Under the pieces are notes generated by a model. That model saw only the letters and a program-made list of their open reading frames with translations. It was not told where the DNA came from and searched no databases. A program made the translations under genes and the position numbers. DNA of 64,000 nucleotides from assembly GCA_050084985.1 (NCBI GenBank), contig JBITNC010000001.1, positions 105,772,001-105,836,000 of the forward strand. Direction: 5' to 3'. This DNA is from Nageia nagi (lineage: Eukaryota; Plantae; Pinophyta). Shown here piece after piece: positions 2,691 to 64,000 of the stretch; the first letter of the stretch is position 1, and every line of letters begins with the position of its first letter.

Positions 2691-3563
2691 ATTAGAAACA
2701 ACCCTTGGGATTAAGACAAGATTGTAACACATGGATTAATTTTAAATTTATTTTTGTTGTACTCATATGGAATGTAAACATATGATAGATTAGAAGTAAT
2801 AGTGAAGCTCAATATCCCCTCTACTCAATGTCATATGTTTGTACCATATATTTGTGTTTGGGGTGTATGATTTTTCATAGCTTGATGTTAATATATTTGT
2901 GGTTTATTATAGTCCTCATATTAACATTAGGTTTGATGGAACAAACCATGGGTGTAATTGAATATGTAATATATTTTCATCTATATAATATATTCTCTAG
3001 TAATTTAAGTATCCTTGATCTTTGTTTTGAGTTTTGTGTTCTAGGGACTTGTTGTATTTCTCTTTGCATAAGTGCATTAGGAATTTATGTGATTCATGAA
3101 ACTTTTATGGAAAACCATGGGTTACAAATGAATTGTTGGCAAAAAGAATCACCAACCCAACTATGGTGAAATCATAAAGGTTTAAATGTATTTGGTAAAA
3201 TAAAGTTTGAATGGAATCATTAGTCCTTCCATGTTTAGAAAAACTATTATGTTTCTCTAGGTCACCAATATCCATTGGTAAGTTAACAACATAGGAAAAA
3301 ATCATCAATCAAAGTATGGTCAAGTGCATCGCTAGACCAAGGTGAACCATAAGCTAGAAAAGAATCACCAAATTTCTATGACAAAAGGAAATCACCAATT
3401 ATACCTCTATATGAATCGCCAACTCCCATTATTTTGAATTACCAAATTTGGAGAGTATATGAAGATGTGAAGGTACACTACATTGCATGGTTTGTCTCTT
3501 CATAAAAGAGTCATTGTTGGGATAAATCTTATGCACTTCCAAAGTTTAACACACATATACAAA

Positions 3564-3576
3564 CATACATACATAC

Positions 3577-3620
<44 letters not shown>
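3564..3620. repeat. (CATA)n/(TA)n microsatellite
   Basis: Seen directly. Confidence 0.95.
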
Positions 3621-3625
<5 letters not shown>

Positions 3626-3693
3626 GGATATGTTATATTTTAATACCTTTAAATAAAACATATAAATACATTACATATTATATAAATTATTTT

Positions 3694-4903
3694 TGTGAAC
3701 ACTTTTGACAAATACAACCAAAGAAAAATAACTAGGTTTTCCAAACCCTTAGCTAAGTCTTCTATTTCCAATGTAGAACCTCTAGTGCTTCCAATCTCAC
3801 CACAAGCCTATCATTGAACTCCTAGAGCATCCAATACCCCCATAAGCTTGATGTTAGCCTTCCTATGTTACCAATCATACCACACATACAATGAATGTAC
3901 AAAATAGTGAATTTACAATTGCACAACACATACAATGATCATAGCATGGAAAACTAACATAAACAAATGTTTGAAACCCCAATGCATGTACATATATGCC
4001 AATCACATAACAAGAATGAGATCCTAATGTCCTCTGATGTATATTAATAATGTATAATAGAAATACAATACAATCAAGCCCATACAGTTGTTGTTGGTCT
4101 CATAGGAGCCAATATAGAGCATATCACCACCAAACCTCATTGAAAACTAATTAGATAACTTTGATACTAATCTATAGAACTATGGTACAAGAATGCTTCC
4201 TTAGATATGAGTACCCTCCATCGAACAAGTTCTTCTCAAAGCTAGATAGCTAATTGAATGATAAAAATAAACCCTTACATGCCACTAGATGGGCTAGATT
4301 CTCCACCTCACCATACATGAATGGGATCCCTTAGCCCAATCAACCTCTAGATTCTCTATTTAGGATAAACACTTAGCATCACTAAGTTTGCATAAGTCCT
4401 ATGGATAGAAGAGAAGTAATAATAATAATATAATGTACAATATGAAGCTCTAAACAAGTATTTATATCCATCCATCATAAAAGCTATCTCAAAATCATCA
4501 TAGCCATTCTAATCCAATGTGGGGCATTTAGGGGGCCTAGTAATGCCAACATGGAATCCCAAACACTCTAGTGTGCTAACGTGGGGTTCGTAGAATCCTA
4601 GTAATACAACATTAGGGTGTGGGACCCTCCCAACTATGATGCAAGCATGCTAATGGTCGTACACCCTTATGAGACATAAATAATTCTTAATATTCCCATA
4701 ATTCAAAATCTCCAATGCATATGAACCAATTCTAATCACCTAGGAGAGAGAAATGCCACTAGGGGCTCACAATAGGATCCACATGACCAATATGTCTCTT
4801 ATCCTAAGTTACATGCATCTAGCACATTGCTAACTAAATAAATATCTTTAAGATATCATTTACAATAAATACAATTATTCTCTATAATACAAAAGGGATA
4901 TCA
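3694..4903 (-). repeat. 3' LTR of the 3.7-8.9 kb element
   Basis: Colinear with 7682-8892 at ~4000-bp offset (e.g. actagg.tttccaaacccttagc, gccactagatgg, atcctaagttacatgcatcta); outer end eroded. Confidence 0.85.
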
Positions 4904-7681
4904 AAAAATCCTCCCTCCTAAGATTACTTATCCCCAAGCAATAATGGAAGACTATAGCATGTTGTCTTCCAAGAATCCTTTAATGATGATATCCCATCCT
5001 CATGAAATCAAGGCTCATTATTTAATAAGTAGGAAGCATCAAAACTATGGCAATGATGATGGTGTACCTATAACCTTTGAAATAGAAGTGAGAAGAAACC
5101 AATGGATCTCATGCTCCTTACATGTACCCAATCTCGACTCCATACCAACTTAACTCACCTAGCTAAGATCAACACATATTGAAGCTTCCTCACTCCCAAT
5201 GTCACAAGCCAAACTATCCCCTGGATTAGCAGTAACTAAAATCCTCCTCCCACATGCAAGTAGAAATGTGTGAGCCTTCCCAAGCTCCAACCCTCACTCC
5301 AATCATCCATCCAGCTCAACATGGGATGCAACTCATCCAAATAGCTCCTCACAATCAACTAGGCCTCTTTGCACTATAACTTGGTATGACTAGCCTCCCT
5401 TTAGCTCAACATTGGTAGCAAAACTCCTAGAATGGTTGTTTTGGGATCTCTTTCATCCTATTAGGTCAACATAGGATATTCAACTCCATACAATGTCAAC
5501 ATGGATCCTCCTATCACTAACATGCCTTACATAGGACCTCTAGGCTCTTGAATGCTCCATGTGGTAGATCCCTCCACCTAGATGCTCCCTGCAACATAGT
5601 TGGCTTCCTAAATGCCCCACATGGGTGTGTAAGGTACCAAAGTGCTCATTGTAAGATGACTACTCTTGAAACTACTCAAGGTGGATGGACTCATAAAGCT
5701 CATCCTCAAAAGTGTACACAATAGTCCTCAAACCACCATGAAGGTATACAACAATAATACATCCATTAGTAGTAGCCAAAGCATCATCAATCTTAGTCTA
5801 CAATTCCTAAAAGATAACCCTTTTCTTCAACATCAAAGTTTTCATCATGTTTCCCTCAATAAATGGTATGAATACAACCCCAAAATCTATAGTATGTGCA
5901 ATCCATGAAGTCTCCAATGATGTGTTAACAATAGCCCCTACTTCAACCTCTGAAATAGTAATAACAAACCCTATGTATTACTCATCAGTCTCAATCTTCC
6001 TGAGAATGGTAGTCCAAAATACATCCATCATGATGTTAAATGCGACCTCCAAACAAGAGGTAGATATGGCATCACATTCATCCCAATCAAACATAGTCAT
6101 CATGTTATCAATGCATGTAACAGTACACCCTTTAATAGTAACTAATTTATTATTAACTTCTATCCCCATTTTTCTTAAAATTATTATACAAATAGCCAAG
6201 AACTCTACCTAATATGCTGACAACCATGGTGACATCTCAACCCTAATTATCTTCCATCTTCCCCTATCAAATGTTGTCCTTCACATGTACCATCCCAACT
6301 CAAGGAAAGATGTAATCATGTTTGAATATGTCTATTCCAAATTAGTCCATACCAAACACAAAGGTAAAGAGTGTATCCTCCTAGTAATGCATGAGTTACC
6401 CTTATACATTGTTGGCTTTTGGGACAATAAAGTAGCTTTAGAAATGACATGATTCCTTACCTAAATAGTGATGGATATTTAGGAACATAATAAATATAGG
6501 AATGAAAAAATGTACCTCTCTTCTTCTTGATACCTTGGCTATGAGTGAATGTGTCATAAGAAATCATGTTTCCCCTCTCATGCTCTAATATTTCAACTGA
6601 GGCTATGGACTCCTCATTTGTGGATACAATGATTTATGATTTTCCAAGATTTGATATATTATTTCCTTGTTTTCAATCTTGGTCTTCTTCTATGCTAGGG
6701 TCATGTTTTACACCCATATCATTACTTTCTCCTAAAATCAAATCTGAAACAAGAATGGCTCTTTCCCCTTTCTTCCCAATGTTATCACTTCCAAAAATAT
6801 TAAGCAAAACCTCTAAATTATTGCTATGAAATTAAAATTGATATCATACCTTTTTGGAGTGTCAATATGGCTAACCCAAGGCTTGTATCTTATCACTTCT
6901 TCTTCTAGCACAATGTTGGGTTTCCAAGCTCCATGGTGCTCAACATGGGTGTTAAATTGCCTATTGGGTCAATATTGGGTTCAAGTTTATTCCATGTCTA
7001 TCATGGGATACTAAACCTCCTCTATACCCAACATGTGATGCCAATATTTTTTTTTCCTATTCTCATCTCAAGCATGGCATGGTGCCTCCTGATCCTTGCT
7101 AGCATGTTATTGAGGTGAGTGGTTCCTCTTTAGCTTATAAATCCCTCCCCAATGCTCAACCATATGCAAATCCATTGAATTGATCACTCTAGTCATATCA
7201 TTAATGGCTAATATGAGCTCATAAAACTTTTTATCAAAAGTGAATTCTCTAACTAAAGTAGAGCTCTTCCTTGTGGAAGTCTTCTACCTATATCTATGCA
7301 TCTCTCCTTCACCACTATAAACCCTAGCTTTTGGCTACATGTTGATCCATAGCCACCTCTCATCCTCTTGAATGATTACCTACCCAAATTTGCTTCTCCT
7401 ACAAGTGGATGCCATAGTTTTCAAACCCTCATATTAAATTTTTCTAATTATCTAGGATGATAGATCAAGTCCTTCTATACTTAGAAATAACCTTCAGATC
7501 TATAGATATGTCCTCCAAACCCTAGATGACCTAGTCTAGGAATTCAAACTTTACTAAAAAATTATCATTTTAACCCTAAAATTGACCTTTTAAATGTAGG
7601 ACCTCCTAATCTTCTAGTTCAATTTGCTACTAGCTAGGTCTTAACCCCACATGCTAACTAGATCTAGGCTTTGATACCATT

Positions 7682-8892
7682 TGTAATATCCCAAATGAAT
7701 ACTTATGCCAAATATAGAAAATGAAATACAACTAGGGTTTCCAAACCCTTAGCCAAGCCTCCTATGCTTCCAACATAGAACCTCTAAGGCTTCCAATCTC
7801 ACCACAAACTTGTTGTTGAATTCCTAGAGCACCTAATACCCTCACAAGCTTAATGTCATCCCTTTTATGTTACCAATCACACCATACATCCAACAAATTC
7901 ACAAAATAGTGAATTTATAAATGTGCAATGCATACAATGATCATAGCATTGAAAACAAACATAAATAAAAATTTGAAAGTACAACACATACACATATATG
8001 CCAATCACATAACAAGAATGAGATCCCAATGCCCTTTGATGTATATTCATAATGTATAATGGAAATACAATATAATTAATCTTGTAGGGCTATAGTTGGC
8101 CTCATAGGAGCCAATCTAGGGCTTGTCACCATCAAACCTCATTGAACACCAATCAGATAACTCTAATACTACTCTATAAAATCATGGGATAAGAATGCTT
8201 CATCAAATCTGAGTACCTTCCATTGAAGGAGTTTTCCTCAAAGCTAGATAGCCTACTGAATGATAGAAATGCACCCTCATATGCCACTAGATGGTTAGAT
8301 GCTCCACCTAATCATAGATGAATGGGATCCCTCAACCTAATCACCCTTTAGATGCTCCATCTAGGATAAACACTTAGTACCACTAACTCTGGATAAGTCT
8401 TATGGATAGAAGAGAAGTAATAATAATAATAATAATTTGATGTGTAGTACGAAGCTCCAAATAATTATATATATCCATCCATCATAAAAGCTACCTTAAA
8501 ATCATAATATCCATTCTAATCCAACATTTGGCATTTAGGGGGCTCAATAACTTAACGCACCAACCTAAAAACCTAGTAATGTGAATGTGGGATTTCAAAC
8601 ACTTTGGAGTGCTAGAGTGGGGTTCCTTGAAGCCTAGTAATACAACATTGGAGTGTGGGTTCCCCCCAACTATGATGTAAGCATGCTAATATTCATCAAC
8701 CCTTATGAGATATAAATACTTATTGGGATTCCCATAATCTGATATCTCCAATGCATAGGACCCTATTCTAATCACTAGTATGTCTCTTATCCTAAGTTAC
8801 ATGCATCTAACACACTGCTAACTAAATAGATATATCTATGATATCATTTATAATAAATGCAATTATTCTTTATAATACAAAAGGGATATCAC
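7682..8892 (-). repeat. 5' LTR of the 3.7-8.9 kb element
   Basis: TG...CA ends with short terminal inverted repeat tgtaatatccc/gggatatcaca; adjacent Met PBS. Confidence 0.88.
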
Positions 8893-10994
8893 AAATGATA
8901 ATAATTCTAATACTCATATAGAGATATTTGGATGAGCTAGTGGTGTTTTTCTTAGCAAGAGGAGCGATGATAATTAGACTTTTACATGTACATTTTGGAG
9001 TAAATTGCAAATTATATTTCTATATTCATCAATTTTAGTACAATGAATATAGATGCAACTTTAGAATCTTGAAATGGTGCATAGATGAATGTGTTACCAT
9101 GGATTTACTAGGGTATGAGTTCACTTGAGTTCATACGTAAGGGATCATAAATAGGTTGGAGTTATTGGTTTATTTTGTAGAAGCATGAGGTCAACTAAAC
9201 TAGATCTAATTTTGTCACTAAAATTTTAGGAAATAACTTTCTACATAGTTTTAAAATTGATTTTATAAAGTATGGGCTTAGGATTGCATTCAAAAACTTT
9301 CGAAGTTCCCTATAATCAATTAATCATAAAAGTACTATTTTTAATGCTTAAATTCATTTTATCAAAATACTATTACCTTTATCTACTATTTTCATTACAT
9401 AAATATTTATACTAATTTTATATTTTGAAAGGATATTATTTTAGTTAAGTAAATTTATATTATTTTAAGGTTTTTGGTAGATCCCAAAAGAGTTTTGGAG
9501 AAGGTTATCCTCTAACCAAATTCACACATATATCATGGTATTGTATCAAAAATATGTTAGATGTATATACATTTTGCTATCACCATCATTATCTAATTCC
9601 TCTGCTCCACCTAGATATATCTTGGGCATATATATAAAAATCATTATGGATGTATATCATAATTCTACCACCCACCTACTGCCTTACTCTATCACTCTGC
9701 TATGATTTATTATGGGTTTTATAATAAATAAAAAATATTTTTAGGTATATACATTCATGATATAAAGGGGGAGATAATAGTTTTTACATGAGACTCTTGT
9801 GAAAGGCTTTTCTTGTAAAGCTCTTACAAGAAATGGAGTTGTAATACTTTTTTATGAAGTTAATGCATGAGAGGAATATGGTAGGAATGTGAAGGGGAGA
9901 GAAATTAAATGGAATAATATTTTAAGATACTAATATAAAAAATATAATATAATACAATTAATATATAATAGATACTCTTCCATTAGTTACCCATGGTACA
10001 AAACTTTATTAGCCCTTATTCATGGCTTAAATGGTTAGATCTTTATTCAAGTGAGCTAACTCTATTTCACAAACCTAAGTATCTTCTTCTAGACCTTTAA
10101 ATTTTTAACAAATTAAATACTCCTTATATTCTATATATTTTATTTTTTCTATTCACTCTACAACACTTGATCACTTTCTTCTCATTATTTCTTTGGTATC
10201 TAATTTATCTAGTGTTTCACCTTACTAAATAATTGGTCCTTATCTCTTATATTATTCACCTCAAGATGGGAATAAAATTATGTATTTGATATTAAAGATA
10301 GGTGAAATATAAAATCATATTAGTAAATTTATCTCATGCACATTATATGAAAATGTACATTAGAGGGAGAATGGATCCTTTGAAAAAGAAGTGAATGGAG
10401 TTGTATCTTTGAAGCTTTAAATGATTCATCAAATATTCTAATAGAAACAAAATATGTCAAATTATCCATTCAAAAAGGATATGTCTATCTTATATTTCAC
10501 TAAATGAATGACCTCTAAACCCAACCCTTGCATGGAGGATCAAAGCATTGATAAAAAGATTGAGTCATTCATGGTGGGGAGAATGTATCTAGAAAAATCC
10601 TTACATATTATTCTCATATTATGGAAGGACTTCAAGTGGATTTATTAAGAATGCTCTATATGGATATCAATGTCTAATTGGACTCCACTTCTAGGTGTTT
10701 ATTATTAATGGTCCTTAGAGCTCCTATGAATATAGTTAAAGTATTAGAAAAGATACATAGGGATAAATTATTCCCTTGTTAATGTTATTTTTAATAGTAA
10801 TATTTTTATTTATTTATAACTATTATCAATCATTATTAGTATCTAGTATTTTTATGTGGAATATGTGTATTTTGTTTAAGTTTGTGGGCATGTGATGCTT
10901 ATCTTATTTGAGCAACAACCATAGTTATATTTTTTGATGTGTTATTTATAGTTTTGATCATGATGAAAAATATCCAATACAACATCACTTGTTC

Positions 10995-34959: not shown

Positions 34960-36953
34960 AATTAGATCAAGAATTAATGTGTACCTTGTTGATTTGTGCT
35001 TGGAATGTCACCAATTCTTCATGGAGCTCAAGCTTATGTCTCAAAGCTAGAAGAAGTTCCTAGTAATGAAGGATAAATTCATGGATGAGGAGATGGATAT
35101 ATTACAACATGTTGGTATGGGATGACTCCTGCATGCTCCATATGTTTGAGTGGATAAGAAGCTACCTACAACCCTGATGGAGAGATGGTCTGAGAGGATC
35201 AACACTTTCCATCTTCCTATTGGGTAGATCACCATAGTGCCAAAGGATATTCATGGGATCCTATGGGTGCTTATGAAGGGGTGGCCCATATTATTACAAA
35301 AGGGGATGAATGATGAATAATGCAAATGTTTGACTAATAAAATTATAGGCTTTGAAAAGTATCATAAAGGAAAGAAGGGTGCCTTCCTTCATCATGCTTT
35401 CAAGAGAAAGATGAAGAGGTTTAGGTAGGTTTGGTTGGTTATGGATGCATGCATCAATAGTATCATATATCTAGATAAAAATCATGAGGTCTTTCCAGTT
35501 GGATTGATACCAATGGTCTATAAGATGATATAGGTTCATTGATATGCATGGGTACCTTATATTATAGCTTAGATCTACCATGATTTGCATAACTTCATCA
35601 TGGTGTAGAAAAGTAGAAAGAGAGTGGCATATTAATTTATGATACAATGTTGGGCGTACAAGCATGTTACCATGGTTAGACCTAGAGAGATTCTTCTACA
35701 TGGGATAGATCTCAATCATCCTATGTGGTATCGATGGGCCAAGCATGGAATGATCATACGGGTCCATAAGATCATGGAGGCTTATAGGAAAGTCATTGAT
35801 GGATTGATGGGTGGTAGGTAACTTACCATGCATGTTTTAGTTTCATGGGTTATTGATTAAGAGAGAAGACTAACATGTGATTTTAGTTTTATAAGAGATG
35901 TTATTTACAAACATTATGCAAGGTTACCTTATTGGCCTAATGATCCAAGGGGTGAGCTAGATTAGCAGCACACACTGGGCTACTTGTAAAAATGTAAGAC
36001 CTTCATGGAGCCTTATATACTTAATAGGATCATGATGCAAATTGATAAGAGATAGGGCATTCCAAAATTTGTAGTGGGGATAAGGAGATATAGGGCACAT
36101 AACCCTAATTTGCACTAAACACCTCCCAAGTGGGTGGAGGAGTGGAAACCTCCCAAGACCATGGGTTGGGGAGTGACTTACATAATGAGAGGGATGAGGA
36201 CCCTAATTGAACATGTATTTTTATCAATCCTACTTGACATGGTGGGCTAAAGTGAGACCCAATACACTCAAATTATATGGAATGGAGTGGTTGGTGGAGG
36301 TTGTTGAGGGAGAGGTATAAGAAGGAGAAGAAGAAGAAGGGGATGATGAGGAAGAGGAAGATGTGTGGGTAGAGGAGCTACCATAATAGAAAGAGAAAGG
36401 AGGATGGAATGTTTTGATTAGGATTCATATCACAGATACACAATAAAAGCTCAAGATAAGCTTAGTAAGTATATTTATTTATGTACTTGCAAGTTAATAT
36501 TCATGTAATAATAATATAACTAACATACATGTTTTATTTTAGTTTTATAGATTAAACTAAGTTGGTATAGGAATTTGAAAAAGTAATAAGATAACAAGTG
36601 GAGGACATACTAGTGAGCGTAAAGGAGGAGATTGCTATGAAGGACCAAGAGATAGAGGGGCTAAAGGTGATATTGATAGCTCTAGATCAGAGTATGGAGA
36701 CACTGTGAAGATGCATCAGGATTCCCATGACTATAACTTCATAAGGATTATGGACCATGTGATTGAGTAGAACAAGAATATAAAATACCTATTGAGTGAG
36801 AAGGGATACCTACAATCTTAGTTTGTAGCTTTGAAGGAGCAAATTAGACTAAAGAGGCCAAGTTTGAGAAGGATGACCTCTAAGTCTAAGAGCTTCAAGA
36901 GTGCTAGTCTAGTCACCGTTGGTACCACTAGCAATGTTAGCATAGGGAATTGA
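34960..36953 (+). pseudogene. Decayed plant mobile domain (PMD; MAIN/MAIL-like) gene, antisense within the gypsy element
   Basis: 'MERWSERINTFHLPIG*ITIVPKDIHGIL' (~35177-35262), 'YAW' (~35544), 'IQCWAYKHV' (ORF 35639..35821), 'EPYILNRIMMQ' (~36009), acidic tract (~36320-36380), probable intron 36464-36550, then a coiled-coil-like tail. Confidence 0.85.
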
Positions 36954-51325: not shown

Positions 51326-51830
51326 ATTCTTAGCATGTGTTGATTTTTTGTCTCCCAATTTAAATTAGTTGTTGCTATTTTGGGTGTTAGATTCGCCGAG
51401 TTGTGATAGGGTAAATTTAGAGTGTTTTAGTTTGCTTCAATGATTGATTGTAACAAGTTGTGATCATGCAACTTGAGTTTATATTTAGCATAATCTATTT
51501 TTTGATCTGTCCAAAACTATATATGTAATGATTTCATTTTTCAAATCAATGAAAGTATAATACTTTTTAGTCAAAGTTAAACTATTTTTATGTTATATGC
51601 ATCGTATGGCATGAAAAATAATCATTCAACATCAATATAACATGTAAAAAATTGTCCGTATAAAACAATTGTACGATATTATAACTCAAAAAACTCATTC
51701 ATCATCTAGCTAATAAACAACTGACAAGCATAAACTCAATCTCAAAGTTATCCATTTACAAAAGCAATTATCCAATAGTGATATTCCAACCTGAACATAC
51801 AAAATATGTGCTCATGAAATATAATGGTTA
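51326..51830 (+). repeat. Left arm of a ~510-bp inverted repeat
   Basis: Reverse complement of 54690-55216 (e.g. gatagggtaaatttagagtgttttagttt / aaactaaaacactctaaatttaccctatc). Confidence 0.9.
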
Positions 51831-52830
51831 ATGTTATGTATAGAATGGATTTGCGATGAAGCATTGAGAGTGTTAAAATAAATACCTCAAAGAGATAGAA
51901 TCTTTTGCAACGCAATGATCACAGGATATGCACATAATCCGTACGGTTTAGAGATCCCTACTGATGTTTTTAGAAAATGCAATTAAATAGTTAAAATTAG
52001 ATAATTAAATAGATAGATGTTAATGTTCTTTTAAACATTTTGATTTATAAGATCTATCAGGTAAATATACATTAAATAGAAAAACATTGAACAAATAGAA
52101 AATGAAATTCTATGATTGATATGGTTTTTTTCCATGCATGTGATTGTGGTTGTAACTTTCATGAACATGTATGAAAAATGCAGCAACATCATGAAATTCC
52201 AATTAGAATTGAGTTCTAAGGAAAATGCTCACGTCTTTGTAAAAGTAAGCACTAAAATGGAGTATCAAATGGAATCAACTCTCAGGAAAAATGGAATTGA
52301 GTAATCTATTTACAAAAGCAAATCACCAATGGTGAAAGCTCTATCGTGAGGTTGGAATATGATCAAACCTTGTGAATTTTTGATAAAATAACAAATAGGT
52401 TCATGTTGTCGTAGAAAACAATTTTTATAGATTATACCTTAATTGTCTTGTAAGTTGTGTTTGACTTAATTTGATTGACCTTGTTAATTTTTATTTATGT
52501 TGTCTGATCTGTTGTATTAGTAAAATATTTTAAATGTTTTTAAGACATCGCGGATGGATTCGACTAAATCGTGACAACGTACACAATAATTAGATTTACC
52601 ATGCACAAATGGGCTTTGAAACTTTTAAAGTAAATAACTAAGAAGAGATACGATCTCCTGGAATGCAATGATCAAAGGATATGCACGGAACGGGCAATGT
52701 TTAGAGGCCCTCTTTTTAAGTGTTTTCAAAAATGCAATTGAATGGTTTCAGACCAGATTCTATTAACCGCCACAAGTATTCCGGCTGATTGTACAACTTT
52801 TAAAGCTTTAATTAGATACAGGTTTCTTTT
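51805..52830 (+). pseudogene. PLS-class PPR pseudogene fragments (two related pieces)
   Basis: 'PQRDRIFCNAMITGYAHN' (~51885-51938), 'VIVVVTFMNMYEKCSNI' (ORF 52116..52304), 'RDTISWNAMIKGYARNGQCLEA' (~52643-52708), 'FSKMQLNGFRPDSI' (~52723-52764); stops and frameshifts. Confidence 0.8.
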
Positions 52831-53252
52831 AAATGTAATTGTGATAACAACCATGATGGTCAGGTAGGAAAAATATAGGAACCTTAAAATAAAGTATCAA
52901 ACGAATTTGAGGTTTAAGAAAAATGTTAACATGTCTCTGTAAAAGGTAACGACCCTTTTCAAATTCCCTCTGTTTAATTTAAAAAAAAAAAAGCAGCACA
53001 GCGAGAATGGTTAAAATTGCAGATTGAAGTAGAAACCAAATTTGGTGTTAAAGAGTACAGAAGCCTCGTAACACCTACGCTGCACTGCTGCTTTCACAAA
53101 AGGCGAAAGAAGGAAAATGGAAGCTTTTCTCCTACTCACTATCAGAGCCAGGTTTAGATCCTGCGCCACTCTGATGTATGTACGATTCTTAGGGAAAATT
53201 TTATTACTACAAAAAATGGAGCAGAGACGATACAAACTTCCATAAGGGAAAA

Positions 53253-53277
53253 TGCGGTGAGCGTGGATCGAACACGC

Positions 53278-53320
<43 letters not shown>

Positions 53321-53325
53321 CCCGC
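53253..53325 (-). tRNA. trnF-GAA: tRNA-Phe (GAA), cytosolic plant type
   Basis: Minus strand GCGGGGATAGCTCAGTTGGGAGAGCGTCAGACTGAAGATCTGAAGGTCGCGTGTTCGATCCACGCTCACCGCA, 73 nt, intact cloverleaf and A/B boxes, followed immediately by a TTTT Pol III terminator. Confidence 0.98.
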
Positions 53326-54689
53326 ATGATTATTTTAGTGTCATCTTAGATTAATCTTAGTTTAATTTGACCTCTGCCATGCGTTTTGCCCCAACAAATG
53401 TGTGTACGGCAGGTAGAATAATATCCTGACAAATAAACTTTAAAATACATGTTTAGATTTTAGATTTTGTTATAATGAATTGGCTTCTTATATTTACATA
53501 ACGATATTACGGGATTCGCCTACGTAAGTTTCGCTCCTTGATGTAGTCCATTAAGCAATTTCTTATATTCCCTAGGAGAAAAGTTCATATTATCAACTTT
53601 TTTAATATAATACAAGCAAAATTTTGGTTTTTGTATAATATACTTTGTATTTTGGTTTATTATTAGTATTATATATTTGATATAAATTAAGGGTTTTAGC
53701 CACGGATTTTCAATAAATATTATTTTTGATTCTTTTGAAAAGGATTTAATTAAATCATAGATCATTTAGTAGACAAATCTTTTATCAAGAATTATATATT
53801 ATAAAATTTTATGATCTTATATTGCATGCTTTTTTACTACATATTAAAAACTACTTTAAAAAATATTTAATTTTTTTTTAAAATGAGGTTCAAACATGAT
53901 TCAAGCTCTCTTAGGGGTTGTAGGTTTATGCAAGCTATCTAATTAGTTTTCAGGTACAATCCATCCCTGCAAGTTAATGCTCATTAATGTAACAAGAAAA
54001 ATGCCCATGCATCACAAGATATCCTACTAAACACTTCACATACTCAAATCAAATATGAATCTTTTAACAACAAATTCATTACTTGCTTGTAAACGAATCA
54101 CATGTACTACAAAGACTAATATAAATGCATAATTTGATGATAAAAAAATATTAAGTATCAACAATCATAGTAATTAATTCATATAAATAAATTCAAATGA
54201 TGAACCTTGAAATGATATGCAAAGAAGATGCATATATTATCCTTTCCTTATGATGATTATCATATTATTAAAATGGGTGCTAAATGTGATAATATATACA
54301 TCATCACTAACGAATTCAAATACCATCACAATCCAAGAATAATATGAAGAGTTAGTACTCAAATAAGTATATAAATAATAAACTATTGAAAATTTGTGCG
54401 AACTATTTAGCCATTAGTAATAATATGTCCAAAGAAACTACAAAACTTATAATGAGAATGCAATCCCTTAACAATGAAATATTTAGCTATGTAATCTAAT
54501 GTCAAACTTACTACAAGAGCAGTCCAATGATTATATACCAACATTATAATTACTCTATAATATTCTAAAATATGTTTTGGACAAACCTAGAAATAAACAT
54601 GACAAACCCATTCTAAAAGATTGTATCTCTTGGAGGTATTTACTTTAAAAGTCTTAATGCTTCATGAAAACCCACTCTTGTATAGATAG

Positions 54690-55216
54690 TAATCATTATA
54701 TCTCATGAGTTGTATATTTTGTATGTTTAGGTTGGAATATCACCATTAGATAATTGCTTTTGTAAATGGATAACTTGTGAGATTAAGAGTTTATGCTTAT
54801 GAGTTGTTTGTTAGGTAGATGACGAATGCATTTTTTGAGTTGTAACATCATACAATTGTTTTACATGTATGACTATTTTACATGTTATATTGATATTTTA
54901 TGACTATTTTACATTTCATACGATGCACACAACACAAAAATCATTTAACTTTTACTGGGAAGTATTCTACTTTCATTGATTTGAAAAGCGAAATCATTAC
55001 ATGTATAAGTTTTGGACAAACACAAAAATAGATTGTGCCAAATATAAAATAAATTGCATGATCACAACTTGTTACGATCAATCCATAAAATAAACTAAAA
55101 CACTCTAAATTTACCCTATCATGCTAAACGACAATTGGGCAAAACTAGCACCCAAAATAACAATAAATAATCTAAAGTGAGAGATGAAAAATTATAGTTC
55201 TGCATATGCTAAGAAT
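54690..55216 (-). repeat. Right arm of the ~510-bp inverted repeat
   Basis: Reverse complement of 51326-51830. Confidence 0.9.
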
Positions 55217-56199: not shown

Positions 56200-59100
56200 C
56201 CATATTGTAGATCTCATCTCCATCTCTCCAATGATTTAAACGATGAGCAAAATAAACCCTCTTTGCAAAAGTTATGCTAGTTTGAAATTTTTTGTAAAAT
56301 TAAAATAATCCAAGTATACCTCACATGTCACATCAACAACTAAGTTAGCATCCAAATCAACGATGCATATATTTTGAGGTGCATAATCAGTAAGACAACT
56401 CAACATCCATGGTAGATGAGTATTGATAATATCAGAGAATGTGTCTAGATGCTAGTGAGACCTGTGCATATATCAAAATGGGTCAACATCCCACTACATG
56501 GTGGTATTTTCTTGTATTTGCCCCTCCTCTCTCTATTTTGACTAGTTAGTTTGAATTATTTAGGCAACTTTGATTATCCACAATGTTGGTCTCTCTTTTT
56601 AATTAGCAGCCCCCTTTATTTAAAAAGTGATCGCTCCTTTTTCAAAAGAGTCCTCTCATTAATCGACTTCCTCCATTTAATTGAGGTATCCTTTTCCCTT
56701 TTGAAATATATGTAGTCCCTCTTTTTGACTTATTAAATAGTCATTTACCCTCCTTATAACACTTGGTCATTCCTCCTTTTAGCTACCCTCTTTTAATGCG
56801 GTCCCCTTTATTCATTAGCCACTTAAAACCTTCAACTTATTATTTGACTCTTTTATTAGCCATTTTAATTGGTTGTCTATTCTTTTAGGAGTTTGGAGGA
56901 GTAGATATTTCAAAAAATGAAGGTACTTTATTTCAAATATCTTTAGACTTTTCCATTCCCAACAAGCATGAAACTTGGTATGATATCCACCCATTACATA
57001 TTTGAAGGTATAGTTGGGATATTAATAGTTTTGGAGATAAATATTTAAAATAAAGGTATTGTATTAAAAATGTGGGTAGGTATATTGACCTTGCATAATG
57101 GTGGAGCTAGCAAAAAGACTCCCATTTATTGTAAATGTTCTTTTAGAATCCTATAAAAAGGAGGTATTAAAGCTCATTTGGGACATGGGAAAATTTGCAA
57201 ATGCATGAGAGATAGAATAAAGATCTTAGAGAGGTTTTTTCTAGTTTTTGTGAGTGATCATTATTGTGAGAGAGAGTTTGTAAAGGCTAACTTCCTCATT
57301 TGTATACATATCTTCATCAAATTTTTAAGGAATAAGGATATTTTTGGCGATATTTCTTACTCAATTTATCTTTAAGTTATCTATTATTATGCAATCTATT
57401 GTAATTTATAAAGCTTAAAGTTATTTTGATCATTCTCTTCAAGCACTTGGATTCCAAGTATGAAGGATATATATTTGTTTTAACACCTATTCCCATCTAA
57501 GTATTTACAGATCATCCATTTAGGGATTATCTTGATAACCTAGTACAGACACTCAAAAATGATTGTTCTTTCAAAAGATGAAAGAAGGATGAAAAAATTA
57601 AAGTAAATTAAAAGTTTTACTATAGTATTCCAAACACTAGCATCTAACACCTAAACATCGATAATTCATCCCAAATGTTAGAGTCTAATACTTGGATGCC
57701 AATGATTCTAAAGTGGACAAAAGCAAAATAAAAATGGCAATATCTAAAGTGTCTTGGGAAGGAAGAAAAGGATAATAGATGACTCATCATCCATCTCATG
57801 CTTTCCCACTTTGGATCATAGCCATGACAAAGTTGGATAGACTTTTCTATCCATATTTTCTTCTAAAAATTGAAAACTTTGCTTATTTTTGAGATTTATA
57901 AATAAAGCCTTCAACCATGAAGCAAAGGTATCTAGTTTGAATGCAAAGTTACCCTATCGAAACACATCCAGGTTTTACTAAGTTAGATGCATTATTGTTA
58001 TATATTTTATATACTTGTTTATGTTCACTTTATGTTGATTTTATGATATGAAAAGGTATGTTCGATGTATTTCATGTTCTCATGTGTGCAAGGTCCACAT
58101 GTGTAGAGCAACCAAACTAATCATAGGAAGTCTTAAAGAGTTGAAGAGAACCAAGAGATCTCGATTCTTCTTATAAGTTTCAGAAGATAATCCTTGAAGC
58201 TTGTAGACATAGAAATTAGGCGTATGAAGACCTAAATATTCTTTTGTAAAAAAGCCCTTTTTGCAAGGCAATAGATCAAAATAGATTCATCATTTGACTT
58301 CTACTTAAGAGCAATAAACAAAAATATTGGTTGTAACATATCTCATCTTGTTTGCTAACAAGGTTACTTTTTGAGTATGAGATTTTGGCACTAGAAGGAG
58401 GTACCCTCATATGAAAACAACATCAGTGATAAGATAAGGGTTTTTTCATGTATATTTTATGCACATTTTGTTGGTTTATATCATGTGGTAGCAAAACTAG
58501 TTTCATTTTTATTTTTTGTATTTTTATAGGATTGACTTGAAGAAATGCTGGTGATTGAACTTCACATGCTAGTGATTGGATTAAAATGCCAACAATTTTG
58601 TCAAAACACCAATGATATTAGAAAAAAGTTGATTTTTTTTTTTTTATCAATTTGGAAAGCACAACTTAGGAATTAAGATTGAGGATCAAAGATGAACACC
58701 TTGTTTGTGATCCCTATGCTCAGAATGGCTGTAGGGGAGGGTATTGAATATCACTAATAATATGCATTATTTTTTTCATTTATTTGGATAAGTTTCTAAA
58801 GTTTATTTACTTCTTCTCTTTTTGGGAATGGATCACATAAACAAACAAACTCATTCACTTAATATTTTACTATATTTTCCACCTATGCTCTCCCATTGCG
58901 CTAAAAAGTGATCTGAGGTGACCAAAATGGATGTGATAGAAAGAGGGTAAATGAACCTTCTATTTTTTCACTTTATCATAATAAATTGTAAATGAATTTA
59001 CATCAAGTTACTTCCATATTTGGAAGGAGTAATTAATCATCATTAAATCTAGAATGAAGATAAGGTGAATTTACCAAGTCTAAGGTAGATTAGGGTACAC

Positions 59101-59602
59101 TAAATTGGTTAATGAATTTGGTGGTTATTCTCTACATATTAATACTCTTACTTGTATACCTTACCACATCGAGATGTGGTCAAAGGATTGTGACTTATAA
59201 CAAGGGGAAATAAACCTACATTAAAGGAAATGTACTCACATTAATGACTTCTTACTTGTCTACATTACCATATTGAGAGATGGTCAAAGGATTATGACTC
59301 ATAAGAAGAGGTAATAAACCATATTTTTAATATTTACTTTGATGAATGAACCTCATTAAAAGGTAATAAATCTCATGGGTATCTAGATTAACTTGCACAT
59401 TATTTAAAATATTATTTGAATCATATTAAAAAGTTTTAATTAATAAACATGTGTGATTGGGAGGTGTTTACAAATAAAAATTGAGAATGCAAATAAGTAA
59501 ATAGGGGGTTATCTACAAACTCAATATTATCTGTATTCTAGCTACGGATAGCAATTTATTCTAGATAACAATGAACAACATATAACTATTCAGAGGTGTA
59601 AA
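56200..59602 (+). mobile_element. Old gypsy LTR plus PBS and 5' leader, interrupted by the young element
   Basis: TATA-like cctataaaaagg (~57150); PBS tggcactagaaggagg (58386-58401), resembling tRNA-Arg-type PBS of Tat-like elements. Left boundary uncertain. Confidence 0.5.
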
Positions 59603-60320
59603 TGTAACCAACCAAGACCGTGATTTGTGTACTTACCTCACGGAACGTACCTGACAACGGAAGACGTAGATATTAGCGATGTACTGATGATAAGCTACCT
59701 TTCCAACAGCGTCGCAACCTGCAATGATGCCAAAAGAGGACCGCGGGCGGTCCGTTTCAGTAATATAAGAGCGCCGGTGGTGTTCTTCCGTTCACAAAGG
59801 AGCGCCGGCGGCCTTATCTTGATAGCTTTGACCTCTCAGTTAGGTCCAGTTCTTCAGTATAGATATCTCAGATAGCAGTATAATATCAGAATTGATCGCA
59901 GATGTCAGGATAGCTCGTGCAAGGAAGCACACAAACCACAGCCTTGTAGGCGGTACCAGAGAATACCTTAAGGGGTAGCCACTTACAAGACCATACGCGG
60001 GATCATGTGTATCCTTGTTGTTGTGGACTTACTATTAGATCCCTTATTTATATAGATATAGGTAATACCGCCCATAGGTCGGCGTGCATCCACATAAATA
60101 AGGTTAATTCACAAGATTTAAGATAAATACATCAATAAACAAGATGATTCACACAATACTCAAGATATACCATGCAATATTCAAGATAACCCATGCAATA
60201 TTCCCATTCAAGCCAAACATTGATATTATCACTTTTATCCATTCAAGACATATAGTTAAGCCAAGCATATTTCATTAATTTATTGATTTAAAAACATAAA
60301 ATCATTTTTATGTGTTAACA
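59603..60320 (-). repeat. 3' LTR (~718 bp) of the young element
   Basis: TG...CA ends, adjacent PPT at 60321-60333, minus-strand TATA-like ctatatataa (~60047-60056). Partner LTR not in window. Confidence 0.75.
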
Positions 60321-60689
60321 GATGCCCCACTTTGGATGTGAAATCGAAGAAATCATGAGATGACTTGAGATTTTATATTCAAAGTAAAAACACAACATCA
60401 TAGCAAGCAATTTTGATAAGCAATGATAAACACTAATCATTCCAAACTTAAGCAACATCATGATAAAGCTATATATAGGTTGAGAAAACTCCCTTTTTAC
60501 ATTACCTTGGGCATGCTTGCCCCTTGCATTTTGCTGTAGAAGGTGATAGTCTGATAAGCTGATAATCTTTGCTGCAATGTTGATGACCCAAGACAACAAA
60601 CTTGACAACACATATGACAATGACCGGACAGACGACTTGACCACACATGCCGGCTGGACGACAACTTGACAAGACCACATCACAAGACA

Positions 60690-60900
60690 AAACATGAACA
60701 ACTCACAAGACCAAGACATGATAACACACATGATCAACTCACAAGACAAGACATGATAACACACATGATCAACTCACAAGACAAGACATGATAACACACA
60801 TGATCAACTCACAAGACAAGACATGATAACACACATGATCAACTCACAAGACAAGACATGATAACACACATGATCAACTCACAAGTCCAAACATGATAAC
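60690..60900. repeat. 35-bp tandem array (~5-6 copies)
   Basis: Unit acaagacatgataacacacatgatcaactcacaag (60746, 60781, 60816, 60851). Confidence 0.95.
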
Positions 60901-60914
60901 CATAACCAAACACA

Positions 60915-61295
60915 GGGGAGAGCTAAGTATCCACACAACTGAGCCCTCTCATCAAGAGGTGTACTCCAGTTGCCGAAGAACCGAACTCCGCAAAACAAGT
61001 GATAAGCTGATAATGGGAGAGCTAAGTATCCACACAACTGAGCCCTCACATCAAGAGGTGTACTCCAGTTGCCGAAGAACCGAACTCCGCAAAACAATGA
61101 TAAGCAGATATGTGAGAGCTAAATTCCACACAACTGAGCCCTCGCATCAAGAGGTGTACTGCAGTTGCCGAAGAACCGAACTCCGCAAAACAATGATAAG
61201 CTAAAGGGGGAGAGCCAAGTTCCACACAACTGAGCCTTCACACTGGCTGCAGTCACATAGGAACCGAACTCCGCAAAACAATTGATAAGTTGATG
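60915..61295. repeat. ~96-99-bp tandem array (4 copies)
   Basis: Unit gggagagctaagtatccacacaactgagccctc.catcaagaggtgtactccagttgccgaagaaccgaactccgcaaaacaa.tgataagctgataat. Confidence 0.95.
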
Positions 61296-62095
61296 GAGCT
61301 GACACTCCACTAAGAAGCATGATAAGCTGACTATGGGAGCTGAACTCCTCTCACAAGCATGATAATCTGATCATGGGAGCTAGACTCCTCTCAAAAGCAC
61401 GGTAATCTGATCATGGGAGCTGGACTCCACTCATAAGCACATGATAAGCTGACTATGGGAGCTGGACTCCTCTCACAAGCATGATAATCTAATCATGGGA
61501 GCTAGACTCCTCTCACAAGCATGATAATCTGATCATGGGAGCTGGACTCCTCTCACGAGCATGATAACCTGATCATGGGAGCTGGACTCCTCTCATAAGC
61601 ATGATAATCTGATCATGGGAGCTAGACTCCTCTCACAAGCATGATAATCTGATCATGGGAGCTGGACTCCTCTCACAAGCATGATAATCTGATCATGGGA
61701 GCTGGACTCCTCTCACAAGCATGATAATCTGATCATGGGAGCTGGACTCCTCTCACGAGCATGATAACCTGATCATGGGAGCTGGACTCCTCTCATAAGC
61801 ATGATAATCTGATCATGGGAGCTGGACTCCTCTCACAAGCATGATAATCTGATCATGGGAGCTGGACTCCTCTCACAAGCATGATAATCTGATCATGGGA
61901 GCTGGACTCCTCTCACAAGCATGATAATCTGATCATGGGAGCTGGACTCCTCTCACAAGCATGATAATCTGATCATGGGAGCTGGACTCCTCTCACAAGC
62001 ATGATAATCTGATCATGGGAGCTGGACTCCTCTCACAAGCATGATAATCTGATCATGGGAGCTGGACTCCTCTCATAAGCATGATAGTCTGATCA
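61296..62095. repeat. 40-bp tandem array (~20 copies)
   Basis: Unit gctggactcctctcacaagcatgataatctgatcatggga; exact 40-bp period from 61461 to 62061. Confidence 0.98.
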
Positions 62096-62404
62096 CTCGG
62101 GTCTGTAAGCACGAAACTTAAAGCAATATTCTCCTGGATATATCATTCGTCAAACATCTATGATGCACTCATGATACTCAATAAGCTGATTTTCCAGATA
62201 AAGGAACGTGAACGATCCTTTCTTACTGACTTAGAACGCCGGCGGTCTTCAACTAAGACCGCGGGCGGTCCTTTTCTTGATGATTTTTCAAAAACCATAA
62301 AATCACGTCCCTACGAATCACCCCTGGATTCCAGATTGACGTCTAATTGCTGATCTACGTGCCCCAAACGCTCAAGTCGAAATTTACCTTGAAGTGTGTG
62401 CCCT

Positions 62405-62460
62405 AACCTTTTTATAAAAGGGGCCCCACCCCTCCTCATTTGTTCACCCTGTCATTTTCA
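62405..62460 (+). promoter_or_regulatory. TATA-box promoter of the antisense PMD gene
   Basis: tataaaag at 62413-62420 followed by a pyrimidine-rich initiator-like region, ~150 bp before the ATG at 62567. Confidence 0.6.
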
Positions 62461-62566
62461 TAGCTGAGAGCACTCTAGAGGTTGAGAGACTGATTCGGAG
62501 AGTTTTAGCCGGTGCTTTTTGTCACTCTCGCTAGATAATTCTTCCTGTATTGCTGTGTTGCACGCT

Positions 62567-64000
62567 ATGGCCCTACCAATCACACGCCGAGAGGGACACC
62601 GAGCTGCCTTGGTAGCTGATTCTCCTGCCGGTCATCAGGTACACCACCTCTTCTACCCCTTTTTTTTTTTTATGCTATGTTTTTGTTTCTCTTCAAGTTT
62701 TAACTGACTGTACACTGGTTTTCCCAATTTTGCCCCTAGGGTTTTACTGTTACATACCCTAGCTCTACATTTTTCTCTTTTTAGTCTGCTTTTCGAACTT
62801 CCGGTGCCATGGCTGCCTTATTCTCACCCGTACAAACCTGCACCCCGAATTTTTATTCCCCTTTTTCGTGGAAACAGGACCGCTGGCGGTCCTTTCTGCC
62901 CTAACTTGGACCGTGGGCGGTCCTTATCCTCTGACATAGACCGTGGGCGATCCTCTTTTTCATGTAGTATTTCTTTGCTATTTGTGTTTCACGTCTTAAT
63001 ACTGACTTGTCTTTCATTTTTCTTGCAGAACCGTGCATACCTTATGCGTCCCTCCGGCAAGAGTGCTGCCTTCACCACTGCCCAACAGTGGCCCCAAACT
63101 GACGCAGCCCGAAGTATTCTAGAGGATATTTCATTCAGCCACCTTGCATTTGCTGAATATGTGTTTCATGACCGCAACATGCTTACAGCTTTGATGGAGA
63201 GATGGGATCCGAATTCCAACACCTTTCATCTTCCCACTGGTGAGATTACAGTAACTTTAGAGGATATCTACAGGATCACTAGGCTTCCTATCAGGGGGAA
63301 ACTAGTGAGCATGATTCCTGTTCCGAGCTTGGAACAGGCAGAGGTGTGGGCTACATGGCTGACAGGATCAGACGAGGTGAATCACAGGAAGAGGGGTGTG
63401 TCACTAGTGAGACATGTGCCAGAGGATCCTCCAGCACGGGGTGACCTGCGGATGAGGCTCCTCATTGCCTGCCTTCTAGATGCTATTGTCTATCCAGACA
63501 AGAGCAGTGAGACTTTCCCAGTGGGTATGATTCCCATTATTCAGGACATGGTTATTCACAGACAACGATATGCATGGTGCCCCGCAATACTGGCACAACT
63601 TTATCATGATCTCCACGGCTTCGCAGAGGTGGAGAGGAAGGGGAGACAGGTGGCTCACTCTATGATCCTACAGGTGTGGGCCTATGAGCACATCACTATT
63701 TCTAGACCGACTATACTGCCCCTAGACCAGCCGGATGATGCCCCTACCTGGCAAAGGTGGGCGACGACCGAGGTACCAGACTTCCCTAACACAGACCTAG
63801 AGGGATGGCGTGTGCGACTTGACTTACTACAGGAGGTGCAGATCTACTGGCGTCCTTATCGGGGAGGTGTACCAGAGTGGGAGGAAGACATAGAGGAGAT
63901 GACATGGGTGAGACACCCTACCTATCTACAGGCACGGAGGGCACTAGTGGAGCCATACAGGCCAGAGCGGGTACTCCGCCAATTCGGCCTCCAGCAGGGT
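62567..64000 (+). CDS. Plant mobile domain (PMD, aminotransferase-like; MAIN/MAIL family) protein, open frame, 3'-partial
   Basis: Exon 1 62567-62638 (MALPITRREGHRAALVADSPAGHQ), phase-0 GT..AG intron 62639-63028 (branch-like ctgac at 63002, poly-Y tract), exon 2 63029->64000 without a stop: 'LTALMERWDPNSNTFHLPTGEITVTLEDIYRITRLPIRG', 'YAWCPAILAQLYHDL', 'LQVWAYEHI', 'EPYRPERVLRQFGLQQG'. Not in the ORF track because it runs off the window end. Confidence 0.92.

Follow-up and report, generated by a model that had tools for sequence, protein, structure and literature searches.

Why should a retrotransposon keep, on the strand opposite to its own, a gene for a plant mobile domain (PMD) protein, and has that protein anything to do with the tandem arrays and palindromes that lie beside it? 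The question is raised by 64,000 nucleotides of Nageia nagi DNA (contig JBITNC010000001.1, positions 105,772,001 to 105,836,000 of the forward strand; hereafter the window, in whose coordinates positions are given), where part of a long terminal repeat (LTR) retrotransposon with such a gene almost certainly runs into the right-hand end. A reading made from the letters alone, here called the sequence-only reading, had suggested that the PMD protein and the adjacent repeats form a protein/target pair analogous to that of the VANC proteins of VANDAL transposons. The answer that we propose, tentatively and with somewhat less than even confidence, is that the family encodes a retrotransposon counterpart of VANC: its PMD protein would recognise the family's own repeated motifs and keep the copies transcribable. 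This proposal is supported by the predicted fold of the protein, by the purifying selection on it, by its having a gene of its own, by the retention of core motifs in one orientation, and by the keeping of PMD in elements devoid of pol.

The PMD gene, its conservation and its predicted fold

The main coding exon of the gene (exon 2, Table 1) matches the Pfam PMD family PF10536 with an E-value of 7.7e-47 (160.6 bits against a cut-off of 34.9; profile positions 14–289 of 347) over an open frame of 324 codons, in agreement with the PMD open reading frame (ORF) recognised by the sequence-only reading. A word-based protein search returned two matches only, and the nearest named protein, from Cryptomeria japonica, is 35% identical. 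With HMMER, fragments 65–79% identical were found together with full-length relatives that are only 30–37% identical and of mixed annotation; no annotated orthologue was present among the protein collections searched in this way. Related copies were obtained by scanning the PMD translation against metagenome contigs. This gave 43 loci with 54–85% amino-acid identity, most of them collinear with the window from the LTR through PMD. They form three or four deep clades, between which third codon positions are about 0.5 identical: clade A contains the window copy, L001 and L002, clade B L003 to L038, clade C L018, L030 and L041, and clade D L027 and L043. As to where such sequences occur, air metagenomes of several studies (runs X1 and X4–X8) contained 40–55% of the sampled 31-mers of 62400–64000, which suggests airborne material, perhaps pollen, of the source species or of a close relative. 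Taken with the Cryptomeria match and the G+C content outside the element, this would suit a seed plant pollinated by wind.

The structure of the gene was compared in an alignment of 29 loci in which distinct lineages were counted. Around the TATA box a block has kept 74% identity to the window, whereas the promoter as a whole has 53%. Of 22 lineages, 21 retain the start codon at 62567, which is set in CCATGGC. Exon 1 (72 bases) is free of insertions and deletions throughout 22 lineages. Its identity to the window is 74%, compared with 53% in the flanking sequence, and by codon position it is 0.73/0.81/0.66. Exon 1 and exon 2 join in frame. By comparison, the intron contains a single in-frame stop (62705) and many insertions and deletions that are not multiples of three. 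The GT donor was found in 21 of 21 lineages, and the AG acceptor in 14 of 22; the remaining eight have AA, as expected from G>A decay. The gene thus almost certainly has its own TATA promoter, a 24-codon first coding exon and an intron whose splicing is supported by the comparison of copies. The TATA box, own promoter and two-exon antisense PMD gene of the sequence-only reading are borne out to this extent, since TATA, ATG, exon 1 and GT are kept across clades. A separate observation concerns run X12, in which one contig skips 579 bases at 62607–63187. The skipped stretch ends in CT..AC on the plus strand, that is GT..AG on the element strand. Either splicing of the sense strand or a variant with a deletion could account for this single contig.

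We then compared coding positions between copies. Pairwise Nei–Gojobori ratios of nonsynonymous to synonymous substitution (dN/dS), in which stop codons of decayed copies were skipped, ranged from 0.09 to 0.18 between the window and its relatives, with a median of 0.17 over 153 pairs, while frame-shifted controls gave 0.69 and 1.08. By codon position, exon 2 of the relatives is about 0.77/0.85/0.52 identical to the window, and the intron and promoter are 0.53 identical. At third positions, then, divergence has reached that of non-coding DNA, whereas first and second positions were held. Between clades, the capsid region of gag, the other gene of the family, shows 0.71/0.78/0.54, so that PMD is at least as constrained as this region. 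Together, the codon comparisons indicate that the PMD gene is under strong purifying selection, and the neutral evolution that would have spoken against a functional protein/target pair is not what the dN/dS values show.

These values also bear on the idea that the PMD frame is a passenger, either a transduced host gene fragment or an RNA-only antisense transcript, with no function as a protein. Such an idea could draw on the 3–13 in-frame stops that each of 26 metagenome copies has in the 324 codons (with almost no insertions or deletions; the window copy has none), and on the fact that no clear expression was seen in the contigs of three runs only guessed to be RNA. However, the stops look like post-insertion decay, being mostly C>T and G>A, and older copies are low in CpG. 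The gene structure is constant over the deep clades, and the low dN/dS together with the excess of variation at third codon positions essentially excludes a passenger, which we regard as highly improbable.

In order to evaluate the nature of the protein, the 324 residues of exon 2 were modelled with AlphaFold2 from a 60-sequence alignment (predicted local distance difference test, pLDDT, 83; predicted template modelling score, pTM, 0.85). When the model was compared with about 48,000 representative solved chains, the sole clear structural match was the complex of VANC21 with its target DNA (9LNK; Z 14.8, root-mean-square deviation 3.9 Å), the next best match having a Z of 3.1. The alignment covers 277 of the 324 model residues and VANC21 residues 304–618. 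The top Foldseek match was the sister entry 9LNJ (probability 1.00, E 7e-3). Sequence identity between model and VANC21 is 13%, and a sequence-profile search of Protein Data Bank chains found neither VANC21 nor any other match; sequence methods do not detect the relationship, which is visible by fold comparison only. The retrotransposon-borne PMD is thus predicted to have the DNA-binding fold of VANC21. A structural homology of VANC with the PMD protein MAIN has been reported (PMC13547354). The analogy with VANC drawn by the sequence-only reading receives real support from the two structural matches, and the Z of 14.8 supports, without proving, the idea of a protein/target pair.

The element, its family and the probable absence of pol

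The region 59465–64000 is almost certainly the 3' part of a minus-strand LTR retrotransposon from an old and abundant family. The window holds one LTR, the second LTR of this copy lying beyond the window end, and no part of 58000–64000 is repeated elsewhere within the window; the evidence for the LTR was therefore drawn from outside, from read contigs and relatives. In contigs of the DNA run X3, depth rises about 20-fold at 59.4–59.6 kb and stays very high through to 64000. One DNA-run contig carries TCGGGTTCACCAAA, which resembles a primer-binding site (PBS), directly before 59465, and this loose end is the reverse complement of the PBS of the relatives. A second contig agrees with the window up to 60320 and diverges from there on. 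The relatives' PBS, TGGTGAACCCGA, lies 2 nt from the 5' LTR in L007, L017 and L029, with near-identical variants in the complete elements L009, L034 and L042. The LTR ends of the window agree with those of the same three complete elements, in which, as in L029, the block of the window's polypurine tract (PPT) also adjoins the LTR. These PBS, LTR-end and PPT matches place the element on the minus strand, with 59465–60320 as its 3' LTR and the PMD gene antisense to it. A TG..CA LTR, a PBS, a PPT and a 5-bp target duplication, as expected of an LTR retrotransposon, are all found, the second LTR and the duplication in relatives. The 3' part of an LTR retroelement, as the sequence-only reading had described this end of the window, is hence upheld by the LTR itself, the PBS join, the PPT, the depth step and the collinear relatives. 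The PBS is not of the tRNA-Met type; together with an antisense 3' ORF and 3' arrays it fits the non-chromoviruses (PMC6317226), without defining Tat. Outside the element, G+C content in the window is 27–34%.

Table 1. Features of the element in the window, and coordinates of three complete relatives in their own contigs.
Feature	Position	Strand	Description
3' LTR	59465..60320	-	856 bp; near-palindromic termini, opening at 59465 with TGTTTACA and closing at 60320 with TGTTAACA (TG..CA LTR ends)
16-bp palindrome GGACCGCGGGCGGTCC	59738..59753		inside LTR
PPT region	60321..60336	-	reverse complement reads AAAGTGGGGCATC; purine richness only moderate
Array type 1	60692..60900	+	35 bp x 5.9, 97% matches; A/C-rich on + strand; contains CATGATAA
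Array type 2a	60916..61289	+	96 bp x 3.4-3.9; relatives have units akin to it, of 71, 82 and 145 bp
Array type 2b	61295..62095	+	40 bp x 20, 93% matches
Palindrome-site pair	62233..62271		about 180 and 156 bp upstream of TATA
TATA box of PMD gene	62413..62419	+	kept in all aligned copies that reach it
PMD exon 1, coding part	62567..62638	+	24 codons from ATG (predicted)
Intron	62639..63028	+	390 nt; GT 62639-62640, AG 63027-63028; pyrimidine-rich 3' end (predicted)
Intron palindrome sites	62877, 62908, 62938		within 62639-63028
PMD exon 2	63029..64000	+	open for 324 codons to window end
Complete relative L009	451-8339		LTR pair 92.6% identical; target duplication GTTGC
Complete relative L034	967-8867		LTR pair 91.7% identical; target duplication ATTTT/ATTTC
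Complete relative L042	~2546-9009		LTR pair 85% identical; target duplication ATAAC

The three complete relatives measure 6.5–7.9 kb in total, with internal regions of 4.8–6.3 kb. Downstream of PMD and on the opposite strand lies a gag of about 700 codons, comprising an N-terminal region, an acidic part, a capsid and a knuckle-like region; Pfam Retrotrans_gag was detected in L014 (E 2.4e-5). The gag capsid block follows the start of exon 2 at about 2.95 kb in some 20 loci from all clades, which leaves no space for protease, reverse transcriptase, RNase H and integrase. An ORF search of L009, L034 and L042 found none of these four enzymes, only gag and PMD. The sequence-only reading had assumed that the missing pol lies beyond the window end. 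This assumption does not hold for the relatives, since about 20 related loci, the three complete elements among them, consist of gag and PMD only, and pol is probably truly absent from the family rather than merely cut off. A gag-pol with all enzymes, as in an autonomous Ty3/gypsy element, is not found in them. The related copies examined being without pol, the family is almost certainly non-autonomous and made of gag and PMD, and we extend this to the window copy, which is cut at 64000. In element orientation, the family plan then almost certainly reads 5' LTR, PBS, gag, convergent antisense PMD gene, two kinds of arrays, PPT and 3' LTR.

Two loci of clade C differ in their PMD. In L041 and L042, only the first 105 codons of the PMD exon were matched (L041 about 7031–7345, L042 about 4961–5275). 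Judging from their sequence, they represent a shorter derivative (6.5 kb) that has lost most of PMD and kept gag and the type-1 array.

A different element is nested in L029 (281–6176), where it splits the PMD exon of another copy; the host PMD sequence resumes beyond it, and the flanking duplication is probably CTAGG. Its LTR ends, its PBS and its type-2 arrays (71 bp x 4.8) are like those of the PMD family. Besides a gag, it contains a stretch resembling a protease and the core of an integrase (Pfam rve, E 7.3e-14); neither a reverse transcriptase nor a PMD gene was found in it. Its gag is only 24–28% identical to that of the PMD family. This nested element may descend from a helper lineage, perhaps as a deleted member.

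Repeats beside the gene and a possible VANC-like role

The tandem arrays of about 1.4 kb reported by the sequence-only reading were recovered by Tandem Repeats Finder as three adjacent arrays at 60692–62095. Arrays lie between PPT and TATA in every copy with enough upstream sequence, and their order is constant. Across the copies, an A/C-rich type adjoins the PPT (35 bp in the window; 43, 10, 20 or 30 bp in relatives) and a second type adjoins the promoter (periods of 40–45, 71, 82 or 145 bp). The PPT-to-TATA interval measures 911–1403 bp in relatives against 2088 bp in the window, where the 40-bp unit has expanded to 20 copies. Contigs of the DNA run omit parts of the arrays, which indicates that array copy number differs between copies.

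Within this changing interval, short cores are retained. The 9-mers of CCAAGAGGCAT occur in 17 of 19 lineages, and the two halves of the core motif occur two to five times per element, on a single strand and almost solely between PPT and TATA. In array 2b of the window, the family core is intact in the first unit and the other units carry a derived form. Among the 8-mers repeated in all clades, the counts on the two strands are 50 to 2 for TGGGAGCT, 46 to 1 for CATGATAA and 32 to 0 for CCAAGAGG. In the window, CATGATAA is found 28 times on the plus strand, 25 of these in 60321–62412, where the minus strand has none. Arrays are hence neither missing nor unrelated across the copies with enough sequence, which would have told against the sequence-only reading, and strand-specific cores are kept. 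A reading of the arrays as RNA structures is not supported, the units being not unusually structured on either strand (z -0.5 to -1.5). A Rfam scan of 59000–64000 returned no family.

The second class of repeats is palindromic. The 64-kb window contains five sites of GGACCGNNGGCGGTCC, where chance alone would give 0, and all five are in the element: one in the LTR, one upstream of TATA and three in the intron. The 16-bp palindrome is found at the same places in all clades, and is often paired at a spacing of 30–31 bp, or about three helical turns. In the relatives, palindromes are located about 520 and about 460 bp inside the LTR (the 520 bp counted from the inner, PPT-side end), at 157, 187 and 217 bp before TATA, at 130 and 99 bp upstream of exon 2, and in the 5' part of gag. 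Both arms were altered together in L030 and L031, to AAGGCCT...AGGCCTT, so that the symmetry is kept. The palindromes beside PMD that had been noted from the letters alone are therefore well above chance, and their places are conserved in relatives.

Starting from the anatomy, the purifying selection, the motif retention with its strand bias and the predicted fold described here, we infer DNA binding, a choice of target and a chromatin effect, as follows. The PMD protein, made from its own promoter, would be a VANC-like, sequence-specific DNA-binding chromatin factor. It would bind short motifs that are dense and of one orientation in the non-coding parts of the element; candidate targets are the array cores CATGATAA, ATGGGAGCT and CCAAGAGGCAT, the dispersed palindrome GGACCGNNGGCGGTCC of LTR, promoter and intron, or both. 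Binding would oppose silencing by DNA methylation or Polycomb, leaving the copies of the family transcribable, and the protein, acting in trans, would serve all copies in which the motifs are present.

Several observations weigh against this proposal. Between clades, the PPT-to-TATA interval is 0.52–0.65 identical, against 0.50–0.55 at third codon positions, so that as a whole its divergence is close to neutral or a little slower. What persists is short cores only, and the derived form is carried by most array units of the window. There are two candidate targets rather than one, the arrays and the palindromes. The element nested in L029 has arrays and no PMD gene, and 3'-region tandem arrays are common in PMD-less non-chromovirus Ty3/gypsy elements (PMC6317226). 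Direct DNA binding is unproven for any PMD protein, according to a preprint (10.1101/2024.09.27.615353). Finally, the exon joint 62638–63029 was not seen in the contigs of the three runs guessed to be RNA. These contigs cover the LTR, the arrays and the intron, and they cross 63028 unspliced; such read contigs cannot demonstrate an absence of splicing, and exon depth exceeds intron depth in the DNA run too.

Some of these observations would be expected if the arrays had no connection with a PMD protein that works elsewhere, and belonged to the 3' untranslated region as cis-acting or simply tolerated sequence. In that case they could be host-factor enhancers for the antisense promoter or the LTR, sites for reverse transcription, RNA export or packaging, or slippage-prone filler. 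The near-neutral divergence of the whole interval, the variable copy number and the type-2 arrays of the L029 nested element agree with this, as do the arrays usual in the 3' region of non-chromovirus Ty3/gypsy elements (PMC6317226; Retand in PMC7264820). On the other hand, short cores of one orientation persist between clades that share only about 50% identity at neutral sites, the units show no unusual RNA structure, and the fold predicted for the adjoining gene is one that in VANDAL21 binds exactly such arrays (PMC5735166). We consider unrelated arrays a substantial but on the whole unlikely alternative.

The protein could also serve the element without binding the element's DNA, by acting on host chromatin regulators or genes in the manner of MAIN/MAIL1, or with Gag in nuclear entry or particle biology. 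Strong constraint at the protein level and the keeping of the PMD gene with gag in pol-less elements are compatible with such a role. Furthermore, antisense-encoded accessory proteins, that of Grande among them, are nuclear, with no role assigned (PMC7264820), and the PMD-C proteins of the host work together with PP7L at host promoters (PMC7156037). However, the closest solved fold is that of a sequence-specific binder caught on the DNA of its own transposon, and the dense one-orientation motifs and phased palindromes would otherwise be left without explanation. A host- or Gag-directed role appears doubtful to us.

The proposal of a retrotransposon counterpart of VANC can be carried one step further. 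A pol-less LTR superfamily might persist because each copy carries a spliced antisense PMD gene whose product, by binding one-orientation array motifs or phased palindromes of the family, shields the family from silencing, and this shield may extend to a PMD-less helper lineage that supplies pol and has the same arrays. We offer this extension as a speculation, with rather little confidence. If true, helper and dependent elements would divide the labour between them.

Two further features of the window lie outside the element. A second PMD-coding stretch at 35084–35809 (+) is 33% identical to the PMD studied here (tblastn E 2e-35); beside it there are no tandem arrays scoring at least 50 except an (AG)n run and two short repeats. 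At 51404–55121, about 3 kb that includes a tRNA-Phe(GAA) gene at 53252–53326 (-) is enclosed by inverted repeats some 400 bp long, whose four collinear pairs of arms are 81–95% complementary. A foldback element, an element with terminal inverted repeats or an insert of organelle origin could each account for this structure.

Comparison with known systems

Much of what is described here was already known in its parts. PMD domains in Gypsy elements have been reported (PMC5418596, PMC9289625), PMD being the most frequent extra domain in such elements (PMC9289625), and the passages of PMC5418596 on this point describe Gypsy-borne PMD-A proteins (Steinbauerova 2011, as cited there). Antisense 3' ORFs with own promoters (PMC7264820), 3' tandem arrays (PMC6317226) and the fold shared by PMD and VANC (PMC13547354) are likewise known. 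In the literature searched we found no retrotransposon-borne PMD matched directly to the VANC21–DNA structure, no old pol-less superfamily of gag and PMD that keeps a spliced PMD gene under strong selection, and no conserved one-orientation cores with phased palindromes beside such a gene.

For fifteen years the antisense extra ORFs of plant Ty3/gypsy elements, PMD included, have been on record with no function attached to them (PMC7264820). The window and its relatives join this thread to that of VANC-type anti-silencing. To our knowledge, escape from silencing through a transposon protein that recognises the transposon's own repeats has been worked out well for VANC alone, and VANC has been reported only from dicot Mutator-like DNA transposons. 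If the binding proposed here is true, sequence-specific anti-silencing would extend to the retrotransposons of large, repeat-rich plant genomes, and could help to explain the very high copy numbers of such families. It would also provide a concrete protein/motif pair with which the action of PMD on DNA, including that of host MAIN and MAIL, can be tested.

Barley BARE2 and similar gag-only, non-autonomous LTR types possess gag along with LTRs, PBS, PPT and target duplications, have no reverse transcriptase or integrase, and need the enzymes of a helper. The present family differs from these in keeping a second, non-retroviral gene that is under selection.

Grande (gene23), RIRE2, Retand and PvRetro13, which are of Ty3/gypsy type, likewise have an accessory gene that runs antisense in their 3' part, between pol and the 3' LTR; in Grande it has its own promoter, and in Retand tandem repeats are nearby (PMC7264820). 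In contrast to these, the relatives described here are without any pol, and their gene is probably spliced and, from its codons, under strong purifying selection. Moreover, its predicted fold allows a mechanism to be proposed, whereas the review states no known function for the others (PMC7264820).

The host proteins MAIN, MAIL1 and MAIL2 share the Pfam domain of the element PMD (PMC5418596, PMC7156037), and a VANC-like fold has been published for MAIN (PMC13547354). These PMD-C proteins sit at specific promoter motifs (M1M/M2M), one of them palindromic, and oppose Polycomb silencing (preprint 10.1101/2024.09.27.615353). An association with partly palindromic motifs near promoters and an opposition to silencing are thus what would make them similar to the protein proposed here. 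They differ from it in being single-copy angiosperm host genes, 22–30% identical to the element PMD, whereas the latter rides on a high-copy retroelement and has its candidate motifs in the element itself.

A close parallel is VANDAL21. VANC21 binds a 9-bp motif, binding leads to loss of DNA methylation, and its targets follow a pattern of high density and same orientation (PMC5735166). In both systems a transposon encodes an accessory protein, here predicted to have the same fold (Z 14.8; 9LNK, 9LNJ), from a gene with its own promoter and intron. In both, dense motifs of one orientation form expanding and contracting tandem repeats in non-coding parts, including the intron of the gene and upstream regions. 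Of the attributes of a VANC-type protein, an element-encoded VANC21 fold (as modelled) and dense one-orientation motifs (as candidate targets) are therefore present here, while a VANDAL carrier and membership in DUF1985 are not, Pfam reporting PMD only. The carrier is an LTR retrotransposon and not a Mutator-like DNA transposon, sequence similarity is undetectable at 13% identity, and the candidate motifs are unlike YAGTATTAY.

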